Positions 6,748 through 17,690 of a DNA stretch of 64,000 nt are shown piece by piece. Under the pieces are notes generated by a model. It did no database searches, was not told the origin of the DNA, and saw only the letters and a program-made list of their open reading frames with translations. Numbering within the stretch: position 1 is the first letter of the stretch; the number at the start of each line of letters is the position of its first letter. Source of the DNA: Guillardia theta CCMP2712 (taxonomy: Eukaryota > Protista > Cryptophyta); contig NW_005434621.1 of NCBI RefSeq assembly GCF_000315625.1, positions 201,398 to 265,397 of the forward strand, written 5' to 3'. The position numbers were made by a program, and so were the translations under genes.

Positions 6748-7188
6748 ACATGGACCGGATGATTTGATAGTCTCTGAAGGGGTAGGGGGGTACCTCGGCA
6801 CTGCAGGTGTTTTTTTGTCAACCTTGTTTCAGTTACGCCACAACATTGTACCCTACCCTTTGACCAAAAAAGTACCCCACCCTCTGTGAAGAATCTTCAA
6901 CTTGCTAGTACCCCCACCCCCCGTGCAACATGACTCGAATTTACCTCCGCCCTACACCCGCCCAGGCAATGCAGTGCCCTGTGAAGGAGCTGATGGACGG
7001 GGGCAGATGAAGAGGGGAGGGCAGGGAGAGGGGAACAGTGAAGGCAGCAGCAAGACGTTCGATCCCGTCAGCACATTGCTACCGTCAGAGTAGAACGCTG
7101 ATCTCATCTGTGTTGCTGCGGCAGAAACCCTTTCCAACTCTTGTCCGCACTCACATCCAGCAAACGGACTGGAAACGTTGGAGGAACC

Positions 7189-10100
7189 ATGGCAGCTGTG
7201 TATGTGGCTACCCGGAAGGGACGAATAAGGGGGAAGAAAGCGGCTTCCATCCCTACCATTCAGTTTCCTTCCGAAGAAGACAGCATCCTCATCGCAGAGC
7301 TTCACCGGCAAGTCCTCAGGTATTCTTGTCCTCCTCTCCCTTTCAATCCCGTGACTGTGCAATGCCGCGACAGCACCATCGGAGACACATGGCAGCGCAG
7401 GAAAGTTTGTCTGAGCAAGGACAAGCTTCTGCTCGGAAAAGTCGGAGCGATGGACGTGATTGACTACATACCGCTGGATGAGGTCATGGCCGTCGTGTCC
7501 AAGACAGCTCCATCAGAACAAACAGAAGACAAGTCCCATAACCAAGGAGAGAAGAGGGCCAGCATCAAGCGATCGACAACTCTGAGGATAGACGACGTGA
7601 GTCTGCCGCGAGAGCCTCTCTCTACGTCCGCTGTTTGATCATGAGCACAGGACGAGCTGGACGAGAAGATCTTCATCATCACGACCATACCCGAGGGACA
7701 CAACTCGGGCAAGTCGACAGTGCTGCTGGCATCGAGCAAGGATGAGCGAGACACTTGGGTATGGAGCATGATGGTGGAGAGGAGCTAAAGGTGTGTGTTT
7801 GAACAGATCACAGCTATCCACCAAGCTGTCAAAGTCTATCTCAAGGAAAAGCTACGGCAAGGAGAAACGAAGCTAGAGAGGCGACAGAGGCAGCTGAGAA
7901 GAATCTACTCGAGCACAGCAAGTCAGCTCTTCTTCTCGGCTGTGATCATGGCGTCTTTCATTTGCGCCATCCTGTCGGCGCAGCTGCAGCCTCCAGACGG
8001 CTCGCAACAAGCGAGAGCGTTCAGAGCCTTGGAAATAACCTACACGTGCATCTTCGCATTTGTACGTACAGCAGGTGAAGCGAGGGGTCGCTGACGAGGG
8101 AGGTAGGAGCTGGTAGTCAACGTGCTGAGCAACTGGTACTGGCCGTTCGTATCGGACGGGTGGAACATCCTCGGTGAGGAGGGACGAGGGTCTGGGGAGT
8201 CATCTGACATTGTAGGGGCGACGCGCATGGGGATGCAGACTTCGTGGTCGTGATGATAACTGTTCTTTCGGAGATCATCCAAGGGGTGCCTGGGCTGAGC
8301 GCGCTACGTCTGATTCGTATCTTCAAGATGATACGAGTGTTCAGGTGGGGAGAGATAGAGTAGCAGGAGCAATGCGAGGGAGAGAGCAAGAGAGGGAGAG
8401 AGAGGGAGGGAGATGGGGGAAGAGACGGGCGTAGGTAGGGGCGCAGATGTGACAAGAGGGACGAGGATAGCGACTGACTTGGAATGCGGCGGGACAGGAT
8501 GCTCAACTCGTTCCGCGTGCTGATCAACGCCCTGTCGTCTTCGGGTAGGAAGGGAGCAGGCGGGCATGAGAGGAGAGAGCTGACGAGGGGACGCAGTCAT
8601 TCCTGTGCTGAACGCGTTCTGCATCTTGCTTATCTTCACGTCGATCTTCGCGATCATCGGGACGAACGTGTTTGCTGGGAGGAGCGAGGACTTCTTCGGG
8701 AACTTTTTGAAGTCGATGTTCACCCTCTTTCAAATGGCAACGGGAGACTCCTGGGCGTCTGCAGTGACGCGGTCGCTGTTTACTGAAGATGAACACTCCA
8801 ACTTCTGGGCAAGTGGAGGTCGGGGAGAAGGGAAGGGAGGGAGCTAAGCTTTTGTGCGGACAGACGGCGATGTACTTTGTGGTCTACATGCTCATCGTCA
8901 ACGTGGTGAGGAGAAAAGACTAGAGACCATGGCGAGGAGTGAGCAAGAGAGCCCAGGTGCTGATGAACATCGTGGTGGCTGTACTGCTGGACGAGTTCAT
9001 CTCGACGGTCGAGCGAGAGCGCAGCGAGAAGAAGGCCAGGAACGAGGAGACCCTCGTGAGACATGATCGCCCTACATGAAGGGAATAGGAGAGACTGAGA
9101 CTTGCTGTGCTGTACAGATCGGACTCGTGAGGGAGTTTCACGCAAGAGGCCCGCTGGACCCACTGGTGACAAGCCTGATGGACTTCTCGACGCTGGAGGA
9201 GCTGTCGTTGAAGATCTTCCAGCTCTATCAGGTCGCTCAAAAGCTCTCGAGCGTCTTGTGGGCTCGCGGACTCACACGTGTGGGAGCAGAAGATGGACCT
9301 GGACGAGTCCGGGTCAGTCAACCTCGAGGAGCTCAACTTCGGGCTCAAGGTAAAGCAGAGTAGAAGGAGCGAAGGACGTAGAGGAACGGAAGAGGAGGAG
9401 GAGGAGGAGGAGGAGGAGGAGGTAGACGCTGACAGGCGGGTACATCAGAAGCTCAAGCTGAGCCCTCCCGTGACGCTGACGGAGGAGGATTGGGACGCGA
9501 TCACGGACTCCCGGAAGCTGCTGAACTCGCAGGAGGAGCTGGGGCCAGAAGAGTTCGAGACGATGATCCTGACGCAGATGTCGAACTATGTGCATCGCAA
9601 GGTAGAGGGAGGGGAGGGAGAGGAGAGGGGGAGAGGGGAGGGGACGGGGAGAAGGAGGGGAGGTGAGAAGAAGGGGCTAACGGAAGGCGAAGGTTGCTAC
9701 GGCGATCAAGAACGAGGCGCAGGAGTTCAACTACGACGTCCTGTTTGCAATCAAGTCGCTGCTATTCTCAGTGGACAAGATAGACAACCCGATCTTCAAG
9801 TCGAAGAAACAGACTCCACGGAAGTCGAAGAGGGAGATCTTGAAGAAGCTCTTCAACTCTCCTGTTCACAACGCTTTCTCGCACTGGAAGTCGACTGTGA
9901 CAATTGCAAACTCTTTGCCAGAGACGAAGTATGCGAATCTGGAGGAGATTCACGTTTGCATTCAAAGAATGGAATCTACTCTGAGCAAGATCGTCTCGGA
10001 TCCTTCCCCAGGTAGACCCCAGGACCTTCACATCCTCCGACTCACCGACGCCGTGGAGAAGATACAGTCGTCCATGTCGCGGCACGACGACACCTTGAGA

Positions 10101-11092
10101 AGGATAGAGGAGAAGATGTCTCGGATGGAGAGGCACGGGAGCGAAGGGCCCAAGCGGCCGCATGGAGGAGCGAACGGGGGAGGGCAACGAGGAGAGGAGG
10201 GGCAGTCGCAGGTGGGGACGATGCTGGGGTCAGACATCATCGTGGTAGGGAAGGGCAAGCAGGAGGAGCGAGAGGAGGTCAAGCTCCAGAGCTTGTCTCA
10301 GCTGACAGCCAAGAAGAAGATGGGGAGGATGCAGAAAGTTCACTCGATGCCGATCCATTCAGAAACCCCGAAACACGAGAAGCTCAACGGGAGCAGCTCA
10401 GCCGTCTACCCCGGACCCTCGCAAGCTTCGCCGCAGTCCTCCAAGAGACTTGACAAGTTCCTTCCCAACGGGGACCCTCCCGACGGAGATCGCCCGAGGC
10501 TTCCGGCCGAGACGTGCAGGGGCAAGGGAGACTACGTGAAGCTGTCATGGTTCGAGCTGCCGGTCAACTTCGACTCGCTGCGATCGTCGAGCATCTTGCG
10601 GCGGGAGCNNNNNNNNNNNNNNNNNNNNNNNNNNNNNNNNNNNNNNNNNNNNNNNNNNNNNNNNNNNNNNNNNNNNNNNNNNNNNNNNNNNNNNNNNNNN
10701 NNNNNNNNNNNNNNNNNNNNNNNNNNNNNNNNNNNNNNNNNNNNNNNNNNNNNNNNNNNNNNNNNNNNNNNNNNNNAGGAGGAGGGGGGGCTGGCGGTAG
10801 AGCGATCGTCGTACGTGGACGTGCACTCGCGGGACGGGACGGGCTACAGCCGCTTCTTCCAAGCGAGGTAGGAGAGAGAGGGAGGGAGAGGGAGGAGAGG
10901 GGACTGATGAGGAGGCGCAGGAGGGAGGGAGAGCAGGCGACAGGGGCGATGGGGAAGACTTTGACGGGGAAGTACGTAGGGGGGAAGCTGAGGGTAGAGG
11001 AGGAGGGGGGGGAGGTGCGAGAGGTGGAGCTAGACAGGAGCATTCATCAGGCGATCAGCAAGATCCGCGTGCTGAGGTTTGAGAGACAATGA
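7189..11092 (+). CDS. Single-domain (6TM) voltage-gated cation channel with N-terminal PH domain and C-terminal EF-hand, copy A
   Basis: PH: WQRRKVCLSKDKLLL...IDYIPLDEV...IFIITT...ASSKDERDTW|ITAI. S1-S3: QLFFSAVIMASF, ELVVNV...DGWNIL|DFVVV. S4: ALRLIRIFKMIRVFR. S5: VIPVLNAFCILLIFTSIFAIIG. Pore: FTLFQMATGDSWAS. S6: VLMNIVVAVLLDEF. EF-hand: DLDESGSVNLEEL. The true start may lie upstream (about 7007). N gap at 10609-10776. Confidence 0.88.
10609..10776. other. Assembly gap (168 N) within channel copy A
   Basis: N run; the matching segment of copy B is 13030-13197, also 168 nt. Confidence 0.95.
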
Positions 11093-12301
11093 GGAATGGA
11101 GGGGTTAATTACTTGAACAAGTTTTCTTTCTCATCAAGATTGAAAGGCTTGATTGTAAGACGAGGACTAGGATTGTAATGCCCTGACTTCACTGTCAAAG
11201 TTCTATGAACTTTCATTAATTTTCTATACTCGACTTGCCAGCTCTCACACAAGCGATATCAACACCGAATTTCTCCATTCCTGTCTCCTCCAGCTACTCA
11301 CCTCAACATCGATGTACCGATCTTCCGCTTACATTTCATCCGATCTTGTCATCCGATGGTTCAAAAGGCGTTGACTGCTTGTTCCAGACGATCATGTTAG
11401 AGTCGATCTGCTCCGACCAGCACCAGCGGCGTCAGACTTGCAAGTGACCGCGCGAGGGTCCTGGCGGTCAGTTGGCATCCGACCCTCTTCAAAGGTAGAG
11501 CGAGTGGCCAGGTCGTTGCTGAACTTGTTGTGATCGACTCTGCCGTTGATGTCAAAGTTTCACATCGGTCAAGGTTCTGCTGATGAAGAAAACATGTTAG
11601 GGGTTGACAATCCTGTCGATCTCGTAGTTCATATCAAATCATAGCTGTCAGCTCAACTTCCACGCACAGATAGTTTCTTGCTAGTAAGAGCCAAGTGCGT
11701 TGGGGGCAGTATAATCCTGTTATTGATTCTCGTTCAACCTGATCCCCTCATGGACAAGTTCATCCTTGTTCGAGGAATTCGATACATCTCACGTTGAAAG
11801 AAGATGCTTCCTTTATCTGCAAATAATTCAGGCTCTTGTCCTTTGATTCGAAGCTTCTGAGTCTGTCATGGTTGACGGATAGATTCCCCCTTCACCAAAG
11901 GCTTCACTGACATCTACCAGTCAGTTGAGATGTGACGCGTGTCTTGGTGTATTAAGAGAAGGGAGAACATTTCATACGATTGACTTGTTGACTTGTATAG
12001 ATGAAGAAGACCACAACGACAAGCTTCAGGTAGCTGTTGAACGACTACACAGCAGGGACTGCTTTAGTTTGTTCAGTCAAACTTCACAAGATGCTTTCCG
12101 GCTATCCGCTGACAAGGTCGGAGAACAGCAGCCAGATCAGCGACTTGGTGTAAAGAGAAAGGCAAGTGCAGCGCAGCGTAGCAGAAGCAGGAGCAGTGCA
12201 TGTGAAGATAGAGGGTTGAGACCACAAGGCCGAACCAAGGTTGGACCCCCTATCAGATCACTCGAGGTAGAGGAGAGGAGGTTAGCAGTGAAGGAGGAAG
12301 A

Positions 12302-12381
12302 AGCGGTAGAAGGGATCAGACTTGAAAAGAGTCCAGGGAGGAGCGGTAGAAGGGATCAGACTTGAAAAGAGTCCAGGGAGG
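12302..12381. repeat. Perfect 40-bp tandem duplication in the spacer between the channel genes
   Basis: agcggtagaagggatcagacttgaaaagagtccagggagg occurs twice. Confidence 0.9.
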
Positions 12382-12720
12382 GAAGGAGGTAGAGGATGAG
12401 GAAGGGGACAGCAAGGGAGACAGCAAGGGAGGGAGGAGGAGAAAGAGTAGGGGACGGCAACATAGGGAGAGAGCAAACAAACGATAGAGGAAGAACGAGC
12501 AGGTTTGTTGGCTAGAATCGTGAAATGCGAGCTGTAGGGTGAGCAAGCAACGTTGAAGTGAACTACTAATGATATCGAGACAGCTAGTATCAAGGAACAA
12601 ATTAAGAAATAATGATCCTGCATGACTATTCAACGCCCTCCTCTTCTCATCATAGTAAAGCGGTTGCTATAAAAGCAACGTTCTGAACAGTCCTTGAGAA
12701 GACAAACTCATCCTCTGATC

Positions 12721-15700
12721 TCAGAATTGATATCTCAGCACGCGGATCTTGCTGATCGCCTGATGAATGCTCCTGTCTAGCTCCACCTCTCGCACCTCCC
12801 CCCCCTCCTCCTCTACCCTCAGCTTCCCCCCTACGTACTTCCCCGTCAAAGTCTTCCCCATCGCCCCTGTCGCCTGCTCTCCCTCCCTCCTGCGCCTCCT
12901 CATCAGTCCCCTCTCCTCCCTCTCCCTCCCTCTCCTACCTCGCTTGGAAGAAGCGGCTGTAGCCCGTCCCGTCCCGCGAGTGCACGTCCACGTACGACGA
13001 TCGCTCTACCGCCAGCCCCCCCTCCTCCTTGCACAGCTGCTCCACCGCTCTGCCCATCCTCTCCGTCTCCGTCGACCCCTCCCCGTCCTCCCCGAGACCC
13101 GCCGAGAAGCACTCTCGCGCCACCCCGTCCTCCCCGACCTTGAGGTACACGTGGTACGTGTCGTAGAGCAGCACCTTGACGCTCTCCGCCCTCGCCTGCT
13201 CCCGCCGCAAGATGCTCGACGATCGCAGCGAGTCGAAGTTGACCGGCAGCTCGAACCATGACAGCTTCACGTAGTCTCCCTTGCCCCTGCACGTCTCGGC
13301 CGGAAGCCTCGGGCGATCTCCGTCGGGAGGGTCCCCGTTGGGAAGGAACTTGTCAAGTCTCTTGGAGGACTGCGGCGAAGCTTGCGAGGGTCCGGGGTAG
13401 ACGGCTGAGCTGCTCCCGTTGAGCTCCTTGTCCTTTCTGGGCGAGAAGTAAGGAAACGAGAGGTTTTTGTGTCTAAAAACAGATCTGCTTGACGCCCGAC
13501 GCTCACTGAGACTCTGGAGCTTGACCTCCTCTCGCTCCTCCTGCTTGCCCTTCCCTACCACGATGATGTCTGACCCCAGCATCGTCCCCACCGGCGACTG
13601 CCCCTCCTCTCCTCGTTGCCCTCCCCCGTTCGCTCCTCCATGCGGCCGCTTGGGCCCTTCGCTCCCGTGCCTCTCCATCCGAGACATCTTCTCCTCTATC
13701 CTTCTCAAGGTGTCGTCGTGCCGCGACATGGACGACTGTATCTTCTCCACGGCGTCGGTGAGCCGGAGGATGTGAAGGTCCTGGGGTCTACCTGGGGAAG
13801 GATCCGAGACGATCTTGCTCAAGACAGCTTCGATTCTTTCCATGTTGACATTAAGAGTCTCGAGGCTAACGGCTTTAGTTTGGCGAAACGAGCTGGGCAA
13901 CCCCATCTCATGCTTCCAGTGCGAGAAAGCGTTGTAAACAGGCGAGTTGAAGAGCTTCTTCAAGATCTCCCTCTTCGACTTCCGTGGAGTCTGTTTCTTC
14001 GACTTGAAGATCGGGTTGTCTATCTTGTCCACTGAGAATAGCAGCGACTTGATTGCAAACAGGACGTCGTAGTTGAACTCCTGCGCCTCGTTCTTGATCG
14101 CCGTAGCAACCTTCGCCTCCCGTTAGCCCCTTCTTCTTCTCCCCTCCCCTCCTTCTCCCCGTCCCCCCCCCCCTCCCCCTCTCCTCTCCCTCCCCTCCCT
14201 CTACCTTGCGATGCACATAGTTCGACATCTGCGTCAGGATCATCGTCTCGAACTCTTCTGGCCCCAGCTCCTCCTGCGAGTTCAGCAGCTTCCGGGAGTC
14301 CGTGATCGCGTCCCAATCCTCCTCCGTCAGCGTCACGGGAGGGCTCAGCTTGAGCTTCTGATGTACCCGCCTGTCAGCGTCTACCTCCTCCTCCTCCTCC
14401 TCCTTCTCGTTCTCGTTCTCGTTCTTTACACGTCGTCTGCTGCTTTCTGTCTCTATTTCGATCCCTATCCTACCTCCCTCCTGTTGTCTTCTTCCTTCAC
14501 TTGCTCATCTAGCATGTCTCCCTGCTTCCCTCATGGTTGACTTCCCCCCTGCCCCTGCCCCTGCCCCTGCCCCTGCCCCTGCCCCTGCTCCTGCCTCTGC
14601 CTCTTCTGTTCCTCTACGTCCTTCGCTCCTTCTACGCTGCTTTACCTTGAGCCCGAAGTTGAGCTCCTCGAGGTTGACTGACCCGGACTCGTCCAGGTCC
14701 ATCTTCTGCTCCCACACGTGTGAGTCTGCGAGCCCACAAGACGCTCGAGAGCTTTTGAGCGACCTGATAGAGCTGGAAGATCTTCAACGACAGCTCCTCC
14801 AGCGTCGAGAAGTCCATCAGGCTTGTCACCAGCGGGTCCAGCGGGCCTGAGCCACGGAACGACTTGACGAGTCCGATCTGTACAGCACAGCAAGTCTCAA
14901 TCCCTCCTCTTTTTATCAACAAGACTTACAATGTCCTCTTGACGCTTTGCTTTCTTCTCGCTGCGCTCTCGCTCGACCGTCGAGATGAACTCGTCCAGCA
15001 GTACAGCCACCACGATGTTCATCAGCACCTGGGATCTCTTGCTCACTCCTCGCCATGGTCTCTAGTCTTTTCTCCTCACCACGTTGACGATGAGAATATA
15101 GATCACGAAGTACATCGCAGTCTGTTCAGTGTGCAACAGCTTAGCTCCCTCCCCTCCTACTCTCTGCCCAGCTCGCTTCCTCCTCCCCTCATTACATTTG
15201 ACGTATTCTCACCCCTCCTTTTCTCCTCCACCTCCTCTTACCCAGAAGTTGATGCGGTCGTCGTCGATAAAGAGTGAACGTGCAATCGACGACGCCCAGG
15301 AGTCGCCAGTCGCTATTTGAAAGAGGGTGAACATCGACTTCAAAAAGTTCCCGAAGAAGTCCTCGCTCCTCCCAGCAAACACGTTCGTCCCGATGATCGC
15401 GAAGATCGACGTGAAGATAAGCAAGATGCAGAACGCGTTCAGCACAGGAATGACTGCGTCCCCTCGTCAGCTCTCTCCTCTCATGCCCGCCTGCTCCCTT
15501 CCTACCCGAAGACGACAGGGCGTTGATCAGCACGCGGAACGAGTTGAGCATCCTGTCCCGCCGCATTCCAAGTCAGTCGCTATCCTCGTCCTTCTTGTCA
15601 CATGTGCACCCCTACCTACGCCCGTCTCTTCCCCCATCTCCCTCCCTCTCTCTCCCTCTCTTGCTCTCTCCCTCGCATTGCTCCTGCTACTCTATCTCTC

Positions 15701-16859
15701 CCCACCTGAACACTCGTATCATCTTGAAGATACGAATCAGACGTAGCGCGCTCACACCAGGCACGCCTCGGATGATCTCCGAAAGAACAGTTATCATCAC
15801 GACCACGAAGTCTGCATCCCCATGCGCGTCGCCCCTACAATGTCAGATGACTCCCCAGACCCTCGTCCCTCCTCACCGAGGATGTTCCACCCATCCGATA
15901 CGAACGGCCAGTACCAGTTGCTCAGCACGTTGACTACCAGCTCCTACCTCCCTCGTCAGCGACCCCTCGCTTCACCTGCTGTACGTACAAATGCGAAGAT
16001 GCACGTGTAGGTTATTTCCAAGGCTCTGAACGCTCTCGCTTGTTGCGAGCCGTCTGGAGGCTGCAGCTGCGCCGACAAGATGGCGCAAATGAAAGACGCC
16101 ATGATCACAGCCGAGAAGAAGAGCTGACTTGCTGTGCTCGAGTAGATTCTTCTCAGCTGCCTCTGTCGCCTCTCTAGCTTCGTTTCTCCTTGCCGTAGCT
16201 TTTCCTTGAGATAGACTTTGACAGCTTGGTGGATAGCTGTGATCTGTTCAAACACACGCCTTTAGCTCCTCTCCACCATCATGCTCCATACCCAAGTGTC
16301 TCGCTCATCCTTGCTCGATGCCAGCAGCACTGTCGACTTGCCCGAGTTGTGTCCCTCGGGTATGGTCGTGATGATGAAGATCTTCTCGTCCAGCTCGTCC
16401 TGTGCTCATGATCAAACCAGCGGACGTAGAGAGAGGCTCTCGCGGCAGACTCACGTCGTCTATCCTCAGAGTTGTCGATCGCTTGATACTGGCCCTCTTC
16501 TCTTCTTGCCGGACGGTCTCGTCAATGTTTTCTTCTGTGCTTGTCTTGGACACGACGGCCATGACCTCATCCAGCGGTATGTAGTCAATCACGTCCATCG
16601 CTCCGACTTTTCCGAGCAGAAGCTTGTCCTTGCTCAGACAAACTTTCCTGCGCTGCCATGTGTCTCCGATGGTGCTGTCGCGGCATTGCACAGTCACGGG
16701 ATTGAAAGGGAGAGGAGGACAAGAATACCTGAGGACTTGCCGGTGAAGCTCTGCGATGAGGATGCTGTCGTCTTCGGAAGGAAACTGAATGGTAGGGATG
16801 GAAGCCTCTTCCTTCCCCCTTATTCTTCCCTTCCGGGTAGCCACATACACAGCTGCCAT
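12721..16859 (-). CDS. Single-domain voltage-gated cation channel with PH and EF-hand domains, copy B (inverted paralog)
   Basis: Reverse-complement near-copy of 7188-11077 with the same exon structure. Pore FTLFQIATGDSWASS; C-terminus ...VLRYQF*. Confidence 0.88.
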
Positions 16860-17690
16860 GAGGCTCCCACACGGCAGTCTACGTGCTTCTGTGAACTCGG
16901 TCTACAAGGTTCAGCTGCTCGTCACGGAACTTGCCCTATTCGGAGACGGCGGAGAAGATTCCTAGACTCTCAGGGGTAACGGCACAACTTAACAGCTGTT
17001 AGGCTTCTTTTTCGTGATGGTAGAATTCTGATCTCAATGACGATCAAACTAGAGTTTGAGTTGTGAGCGAGGAGCTTAAAGCTCAAGATGTTAGCAAGGA
17101 AATTGTTAGAAGACTAGAAGCTGCCACTACTGATGACTAGCTGCTCGATGTCCCTCGCTTCACAAGTTCGAAACCATAAAAGAGCTGTGGGTACCGTGCC
17201 CGTACAATCGACCTTACTTTAGTAGGCAGAGGGGGTGGGGGTGGATCATGAGGAGGCCTGACCGGTACCTTAGAAATATCTACAAGGGGTTCATGTCGGA
17301 ATGGGGTCAACTGAGGGGTGGGGTCCTGAATAAAACCTTTTTACTACCGTAATCTTTTGCATGAAAAAAAAAAAAGGCGAAAATGATCAAGAAAAAAAAG
17401 GTCAAAGTTTCAAATAACGGATTTCCGTTACATTCGCATGTTTCCGATACTAGCCTACTCTATGTATTTTCACTGCGTGGCTGATCATCGGTCTTTTAGG
17501 ACTATGGTGCATGATTGCTTCAGCTACGGACTAACGTGAACGCCTGTACACAGAGAGAGGTCAAAACAACTCGATGAAATGTTCATTGTCCAAAAGAATT
17601 CACTGCTACTTTAGTACAACCCATCCCCCAAGAACCTGGGCTTCTGGTTTTCGGCCTGCTAGACTGTCAGAAAGGAAACCCTGCTACAAT

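Follow-up and report, generated by a model that had tools for sequence, protein, structure and literature searches.

The window analyzed here is a stretch of 64,000 nucleotides (nt) from the cryptophyte Guillardia theta CCMP2712 (contig NW_005434621.1, positions 201,398 to 265,397 of the forward strand), and positions are counted from its first letter unless another contig is named. Herein, two channel genes, termed A and B, face each other tail-to-tail (convergent) on inverted arms that flank a unique spacer—the layout of a gene palindrome. The arms are nearly identical except for six short segments, termed islands, in which the two copies differ strongly. The locus is probably a true gene palindrome, in which an old duplicate has been homogenized by arm-to-arm recombination everywhere but in these six segments.

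The palindrome and its two channel genes

Homology between the arms starts 1 nt before both ATGs (7189 and 16859) and ends 205 nt past both stops (Table 1). No similarity is detectable past the arm ends, neither between the 5′ flanks, which are unrelated up to position −1, nor between the two spacer halves. A search of the spacer for tRNA and Rfam families gave no match. It contains a tandem 40-nt duplication (12295-12374) with copies that are 95% identical.

Table 1. Coordinates of the palindrome, its genes, and its islands in the window, and of further family loci in the assembly (pS and pN, proportions of differing synonymous and non-synonymous sites; dN, non-synonymous divergence)
Feature	Arm A or single position	Arm B	Strand	Description
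Palindrome arm A	7188-11076		+	3889 nt; carries gene A
Palindrome arm B		16860-12734	−	4127 nt; carries gene B
Unique spacer	11077-12733			1657 nt; two halves unrelated to each other
Gene A, coding sequence	7189-10871		+	14 exons, 931 codons including 56 unread
Gene B, coding sequence		16859-12935	−	14 exons, 929 codons, completely read, open
Selectivity filter TGDSW	8740-8754	15310-15296	+ / −	residues identical
EF-hand loop	9296-9331		+	DLDESGSVNLEE, same in B; Pfam EF-hand_5 weak, E 0.038
Run of unread letters (N)	10609-10776		+	168 nt = 56 codons, in frame
Island 1	7507-7563	16541-16488		PH-like domain loop; pS 0.45, pN 0.35
Island 2 (pore)	8736-8890	15314-15095		pS 0.65, pN 0.16
Island 3	9034-9162	14951-14833		post-S6 linker, intron 10, start of next exon; pS 0.59, pN 0.27
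Island 3b	~9388-9401	within 14645-14358		indel in intron 12
Intron 12	9350-9448 (99 nt)	14645-14358 (288 nt)		GAG-type microsatellite
Island 4	9888-9981	13915-13822		C-terminal exon; synonymous sites saturated, dN 0.64
Island 5	10292-10380	13511-13426		C-terminal exon; synonymous sites saturated, dN 0.85
Further family loci	C451; C38:261.5-264 kb; C35:444-445.7 kb; C60:94-98 kb; C47:99 kb and 316 kb

The gene models follow GT-AG borders and frame continuity and were compared with the proteins of relatives. Both genes are intact and have 13 intron positions in common. Judged by motif, architecture, and host group, A and B are likely PH-like/EukCatB-type single-domain voltage-gated cation channels. 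The N-terminal PH-like region matches PF15404 (PH_4) in its C-terminal portion only, with 24.4 bits and thus below the cut-off of 27; the usual W of the final helix is present in the spliced sequence. Exon 1 contains a candidate 54-nt GT-AG intron in frame (7320-7373; in B 16728-16675), and the open reading frame (ORF) stays open either way; its removal gives a better PH β1–β2 sequence.

The pore exon matches PF00520 (Ion_trans) with 32.7 bits (cut-off 25). The protein has one six-helix domain, S1–S6, of which S4 in the spliced model (LRLIRIFKMIRVFR) is arginine-rich with a basic residue at each third position. The best match of the pore exon among solved structures is NaChBac (PDB 6vwx, E 1e-11), with the P1 helix, the filter, and the P2 helix being collinear. 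The motif TGDSWAS is common to A, B, and their paralogs, and its D aligns with the filter E of the LESWAS motif of NaChBac. Together with the C-terminal EF-hand (a weak Pfam match), the filter conforms to the TG[E/D]SW plus EF-hand pattern of EukCatB-type channels. A long C-terminal extension follows, with a small conserved domain at its end. About 80 C-terminal residues (B 12935-13180; ends of P0004 and P0006; YVKLSWFELP ... VDVxSRDG..RFFQAR) are common to the family paralogs, and a β-β-β-α-β-β fold is predicted for them with low confidence; they have no Pfam match.

One segment of arm A is unread. Its counterparts in arm B (13030-13197) and in two metagenome contigs of a relative, L017 and L018, are exactly 168 nt long without any indel, and the ORF of arm A runs open across the segment in an unchanged frame, its last 30 residues being those of B. 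The unread run is consistent with continuous in-frame sequence, and its letters could hide another island. A length that matches the homologues exactly is unexpected for a gap of merely estimated length.

Islands of old divergence between near-identical arms

Outside the islands, A and B are identical to 99.5% in exons, 98.4% in introns, and 100% in the 3′ untranslated region (3′UTR), with 31 scattered single differences left in these blocks. In 50-column windows of a global alignment of the arms, identity is 96-100% throughout except in six sharp-edged islands. The 220 mismatches in 3701 ungapped columns have a variance-to-mean ratio per 50 columns of 12.9, compared with 0.93 (maximum 1.65) in 2000 shuffles; 42 of the 74 windows are free of mismatches, a count that never exceeds 10 in the shuffles. 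Such clustering far exceeds what chance would give. A preliminary description of the locus had proposed near-identical arms broken by abrupt islands of divergence, and the identity profile bears this out, with the differences concentrated in the islands and not spread evenly. Its coordinates and the five peptide pairs that it quoted are all correct and in frame, and the TGDSW residues match between the arms as it had stated. All five of its islands are present; a sixth, the intronic island 3b, had been noted only in part.

Island 1 encodes APSEQTEDKSHNQG in A and S-TEENIDETVRQE in B. Island 2 extends from the last P1-helix residue across the P2 helix, the loop to S6, and intron 8 to the start of S6—on the NaChBac comparison, the P2 helix and the loop to S6. 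Its replacements (A/B: M/I, AVT/SIA, TEDEHS/IDDDRI, and VVYM/VIYI) are conservative, and its divergence is mainly synonymous and intronic. Herein, intron 8 measures 55 nt in A (8809-8863) and 120 nt in B (15241-15122); its donor is of the GC-AG type in A (GCAAGT) and of the GT-AG type in B (GTAAGA). Intron 10, within island 3, is 62 nt long in A and 52 nt in B. At island 3b, intron 12 of B has an additional block of 189 nt, which is also present in the contigs of the relative. A part of intron 13 (14127-14168; arm A mirror ~9638-9682) is purine-rich and of low complexity, of the GGAGGGGAG type; two called ORFs of the relative, L018:1248-1499 and L017:149-412, are homologous to this stretch.

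For islands 4 and 5, the C-terminal ORF was modeled with AlphaFold2 at a mean pLDDT of 45 and was read for order versus disorder only. In this low-confidence model, island 4 is predicted to lie at a loop and helix start ahead of a long helix, and island 5 in a disordered stretch. A motif [RK]xxSxP within island 5 (A 10330-10350; B 13470-13450) is found in both island types, in paralogs, and in Hanusia (KVHSMP, KNLSFP, RTLSYP). It resembles a basophilic-kinase or 14-3-3-type site, and we take it to be a putative one.

The islands and the remainder of the gene pair differ greatly in age. Outside the islands, pS is 0.013 and pN 0.004 (seven synonymous and seven non-synonymous differences); for all islands pooled, the values are 0.69 and 0.34, with pS reaching 0.65-0.85 within islands. 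The synonymous difference is hence about 50 times higher in the islands, and at their edges identity shifts within a few bases. Within islands 2 and 3, intron sequence is about 70% identical between the arms, has indels, and equals the exon sequence in its degree of divergence. Because the intron sequence within these islands is equally diverged, the divergence appears to be old, which argues against fast protein evolution as its sole source.

A reading of the islands as micro-inversions or frame-shifted copies was rejected, as an in-frame alignment was found. Reverse-complement scores are at or below those of shuffled sequence for islands 1-4; for island 5, the score is 3.0 compared with a weak forward score of 2.0.

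A metagenomic relative and the history of the arms

Protein searches identified a relative of the locus in four metagenome contigs of the ENA (L017, L018, L019, and L020; project PRJEB17505, two samples), which are MEGAHIT k127 assemblies of short Illumina reads; the JGI metagenomes scanned with the C-terminal ORF gave no relative. L018 begins at the pore exon, continues past the C-terminal exon into the B side of the spacer, spans the spacer completely, and breaks off after 22 nt of the inverted arm. Its terminal inverted repeat is 22 nt long, with the copies 1664 nt apart, a distance that corresponds to the spacer. The spacer is conserved to 86-90% between this genome and the relative. L018 carries the same palindrome, which thus existed before the two lineages split. 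The divergence of the islands is about ten times older than this split.

In the blocks between the islands, the arms are closer to each other than either is to the relative. Exon blocks are 95.6-97.8% identical between this genome and the relative, compared with 99.5% between A and B; the corresponding values are 92.5-94% and 98.4% for intron blocks and 95% and 100% for the 3′UTR, and unique flanks are 77-90% identical between this genome and the relative. At the block sites covered by both L017 and L018, A and B agree with each other and differ from the two agreeing contigs in 24 cases; A differs from B at 7 sites, and another 23 carry a difference confined to one contig. Such a pattern is the signature of concerted evolution that would have continued after the split, with the relative known from metagenome contigs only.

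The islands of the relative were typed by their identity to the A or the B version. In L019 and L020, the 5′ flank of A is joined to islands 1-3 and an intron block, all of the B type. In L018, islands 2 and 3 are of the B type and islands 4 and 5 of the A type, followed by the B-side spacer, and L017 has a B-type island 4 and an A-type island 5, followed by the A-side spacer. Island 4 hence occurs in both types, with the same borders and near-identical flanks, an independent reproduction of the mosaic. As assembled, the cassette combinations are not those of the reference, as would be expected if conversion tracts or crossovers end within the identical blocks; a single flip of the spacer together with two conversions would account for all four contigs.

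The proposed history starts with an inverted duplication of a channel gene before the split from the relative. Since then, the arms would have recombined repeatedly with each other, meaning gene conversion and possibly crossing-over, which would turn the spacer around. Homogenization would have passed over six short segments, which kept their old divergence, and exchanges resolving in the identical blocks would overwrite or swap whole cassettes, leaving combinations specific to each lineage. Arm-to-arm conversion is well supported, and it is conversion that we infer as the mechanism.

Several observations weigh against this history. The reference arms are known here from the letters of the assembly alone, and arm A includes the unread 168-nt stretch. 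Sampled words of the locus are almost absent from 13 sequencing runs guessed to be RNA. Among the contigs of the relative, of which the sampling is incomplete, none has the 5′ flank of B, an A-type island 1, 2, or 3, or a B-type island 5. L017 and L018 are identical over 214 and 559 nt, which a k127 graph cannot phase, and the linkage of cassettes to a spacer side or a 5′ flank could be chimeric. Finally, the A-side spacer differs by 5.3% between L017:1788-2423 and L018:3946-4582, with the adjoining 559 nt of arm being identical; two strains may be mixed here, or the arm may be far more conserved than the spacer.

The unread stretch within the repeat and the length of the arms compared with Sanger reads also raise the question of a reference assembly artefact, which would have mixed the reads of two alleles or paralogs, so that the identical blocks are their consensus, or would have put islands on the wrong arm. 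Such an origin is very improbable. Blocks of 99-100% identity beside islands of 55-75% cannot come from averaging uniformly diverged copies, and the 31 scattered block differences show that the arms were not simply collapsed. Moreover, the palindrome end, the spacer, and the island-4 mosaic recur in the independent Illumina metagenome assemblies of the relative, and run X1 (a separate study of 2021, probably DNA) contains 85% of the sampled locus words. In run X6, a freshwater metagenome of 2023, 26% of the sampled 31-letter locus words are found, which implies that this sample contains near-identical Guillardia-like DNA.

The sequence of the islands could also have come from elsewhere in the genome. 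The 87,145,349-base assembly has at least six further family loci (C451, C38, C35, C60, and two on C47), which share the TGDSW (or TGDAW) filter. The closest paralog is C451, a 6.9-kb contig with 69-88% nucleotide identity. The polarity of the differences depends on the island: at the pore, A has the family consensus (QMATGDSWASAVTRSLF in C35 and C60) and B is derived; at islands 4 and 5, B resembles C451 and a fragment from Hanusia phi, and A is derived. This fragment is 65% identical to C451, 55% to B, and 46% to A; it therefore dates C451 and not the split of A and B, as it is nearer to C451 than to either gene. No second Hanusia phi copy was found in the database searched.

The availability of these paralogous loci and the island-dependent polarity would suit a recent inverted duplication, with islands imported later and patchwise by ectopic conversion from family members or a divergent haplotype. 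The evidence makes this scarcely credible. Throughout the assembly, no third locus matches any island above about 80% (the best reach ~70-80%), and for A-type islands 4 and 5 the rest of the genome has no match at all; a recent donor within the genome is thereby excluded. Both types of island 4 and the A-type island 5 are already present in the relative, and the palindrome is common to the relative, hence not recent. An old duplicate that was homogenized between its arms accordingly accounts best for the identical blocks, and what has kept the islands apart is a separate question.

Persistence of the islands and comparison with known systems

Between this genome and the relative, pN/pS is 0.14 for the B type of island 2, 0.27 for the B type of island 4, 0.37 for the B type of island 1, 0.5-0.6 for the A type of island 5, and 0.67 for the A type of island 4; the B type of island 3 is identical in both, and the blocks range from 0.22 to 0.33. 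A pN/pS above 1 was sought for each cassette, between types and between lineages, and found in none. Each cassette type would thus be under purifying selection, which suggests that both copies are or were translated; most likely, both have been working genes.

The preliminary description had proposed an old duplication with selection protecting the islands. Its first part, the homogenization from arm to arm, is supported by the pS contrast, the shared palindrome, and the 24 compared with 7 sites; selective protection remains a hypothesis. It had looked to dN/dS between the arms in this regard, and here pN/pS is below 1 throughout and the filter is unchanged, so that the differences between A and B carry no selective signature.

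In its strong form, this proposal holds that selection protects the islands—outer vestibule, post-S6 gate linker, and C-terminal regulatory segments—because they make A and B different subunits, which would form heterotetramers tuned by the A:B ratio through unrelated promoters. Islands of 57-155 nt that are about ten times older than the split lie amid much-converted blocks, where neutral heterologies are expected to be overwritten; both types of island 4 and their borders were kept in the relative; the 5′ flanks, unrelated up to position −1, permit separate regulation; and island 5 retains [RK]xxSxP in differing contexts. A known analogue exists in the ATP1A1 paralogs of frogs (bioRxiv 10.1101/2020.08.04.234435). 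On the other side, no cassette exceeds a pN/pS of 1, A and B do not differ in the filter and show conservative replacements in the pore island, the relative yielded only B-type islands 1-3 and only an A-type island 5, and island 5 falls into a stretch predicted as disordered in a low-confidence model. The strong form is hence rather unlikely.

On the narrower question, persistence by selection for difference and persistence as unerased heterologies are about even. The survival of 57-155-nt islands beside often-converted blocks favors some selection; islands that seem to have been overwritten in the relative, and cassettes that bear no selective signature, favor passive persistence. A further and still more doubtful idea is that the palindrome acts as a cassette shuffler, in which selection keeps both island versions, and conversion or flip-flop crossovers reassort them between two differently regulated genes. 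If so, strains would have different subunit pairs (in outer vestibule, gate linker, coiled region, and phospho-motif context), co-assembling into channels with graded properties. Should the copies differ in function, the islands mark the segments to swap.

As channels, A and B can be compared with EukCatB and bacterial systems. Cryptophyte single-domain channels have been placed in the EukCatB clade, together with those of haptophytes and pelagophytes (PMC6509283). A and B resemble this group in having one six-helix domain, an arginine-rich S4, TG[E/D]SW, a C-terminal EF-hand region, and a cryptophyte host. The haptophyte channel EhEUKCATB1 has a TGESWSE filter and an EF-hand pair and is Na+-selective, and its E305D mutant (TGDSWSE) conducts Ca2+ and Ba2+ (bioRxiv 10.1101/2020.04.29.068528). 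Unlike EhEUKCATB1, A and B contain D instead of E in the filter, an N-terminal PH-like domain, and the long C-terminal extension with its small end domain. Because their TGDSW filter is like that of the E305D mutant, we infer that A and B would be Ca2+-permeable voltage-gated channels. They would be a cryptophyte case of an EukCatB-like channel with TGDSW as its native filter, for which the haptophyte mutagenesis predicts Ca2+ conduction. In contrast to NaChBac and the BacNav channels, they are eukaryotic and intron-rich, have extra domains, and contain TGDSW, not TLESW.

As a gene pair, A and B belong with systems in which recombination keeps duplicates alike. In sex-chromosome and other gene palindromes, the arms are kept alike by arm-to-arm gene conversion (PMC3403216). 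The present locus shares with these the inverted arms and unique spacer, arms that are closer within the genome than orthologous arms are, and a structure conserved in a relative. It differs in its 3.9-kb arms with one gene each, its unicellular algal host, the absence of a sex-chromosome context, and its six old unconverted islands. The ATP1A1 paralogs of Leptodactylus undergo concerted evolution, with a few differences held by selection against conversion (bioRxiv 10.1101/2020.08.04.234435). In both cases, conversion would have homogenized the copies and spared discrete sites that stay different in more than one lineage; these are single substitutions of proven function in ATP1A1, compared with cassettes of 57-155 nt, intron included, that are known from sequence alone at this locus. 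The process is already known from gene palindromes and frog ATP1A1, and this pair is an unusually clean example of it. Its outgroup points to homogenization going on after the lineages had split, and the locus, with two genes in less than 10 kb, is compact enough for a study of whether selection or mismatch-driven termination of conversion tracts lets short heterologies survive conversion.

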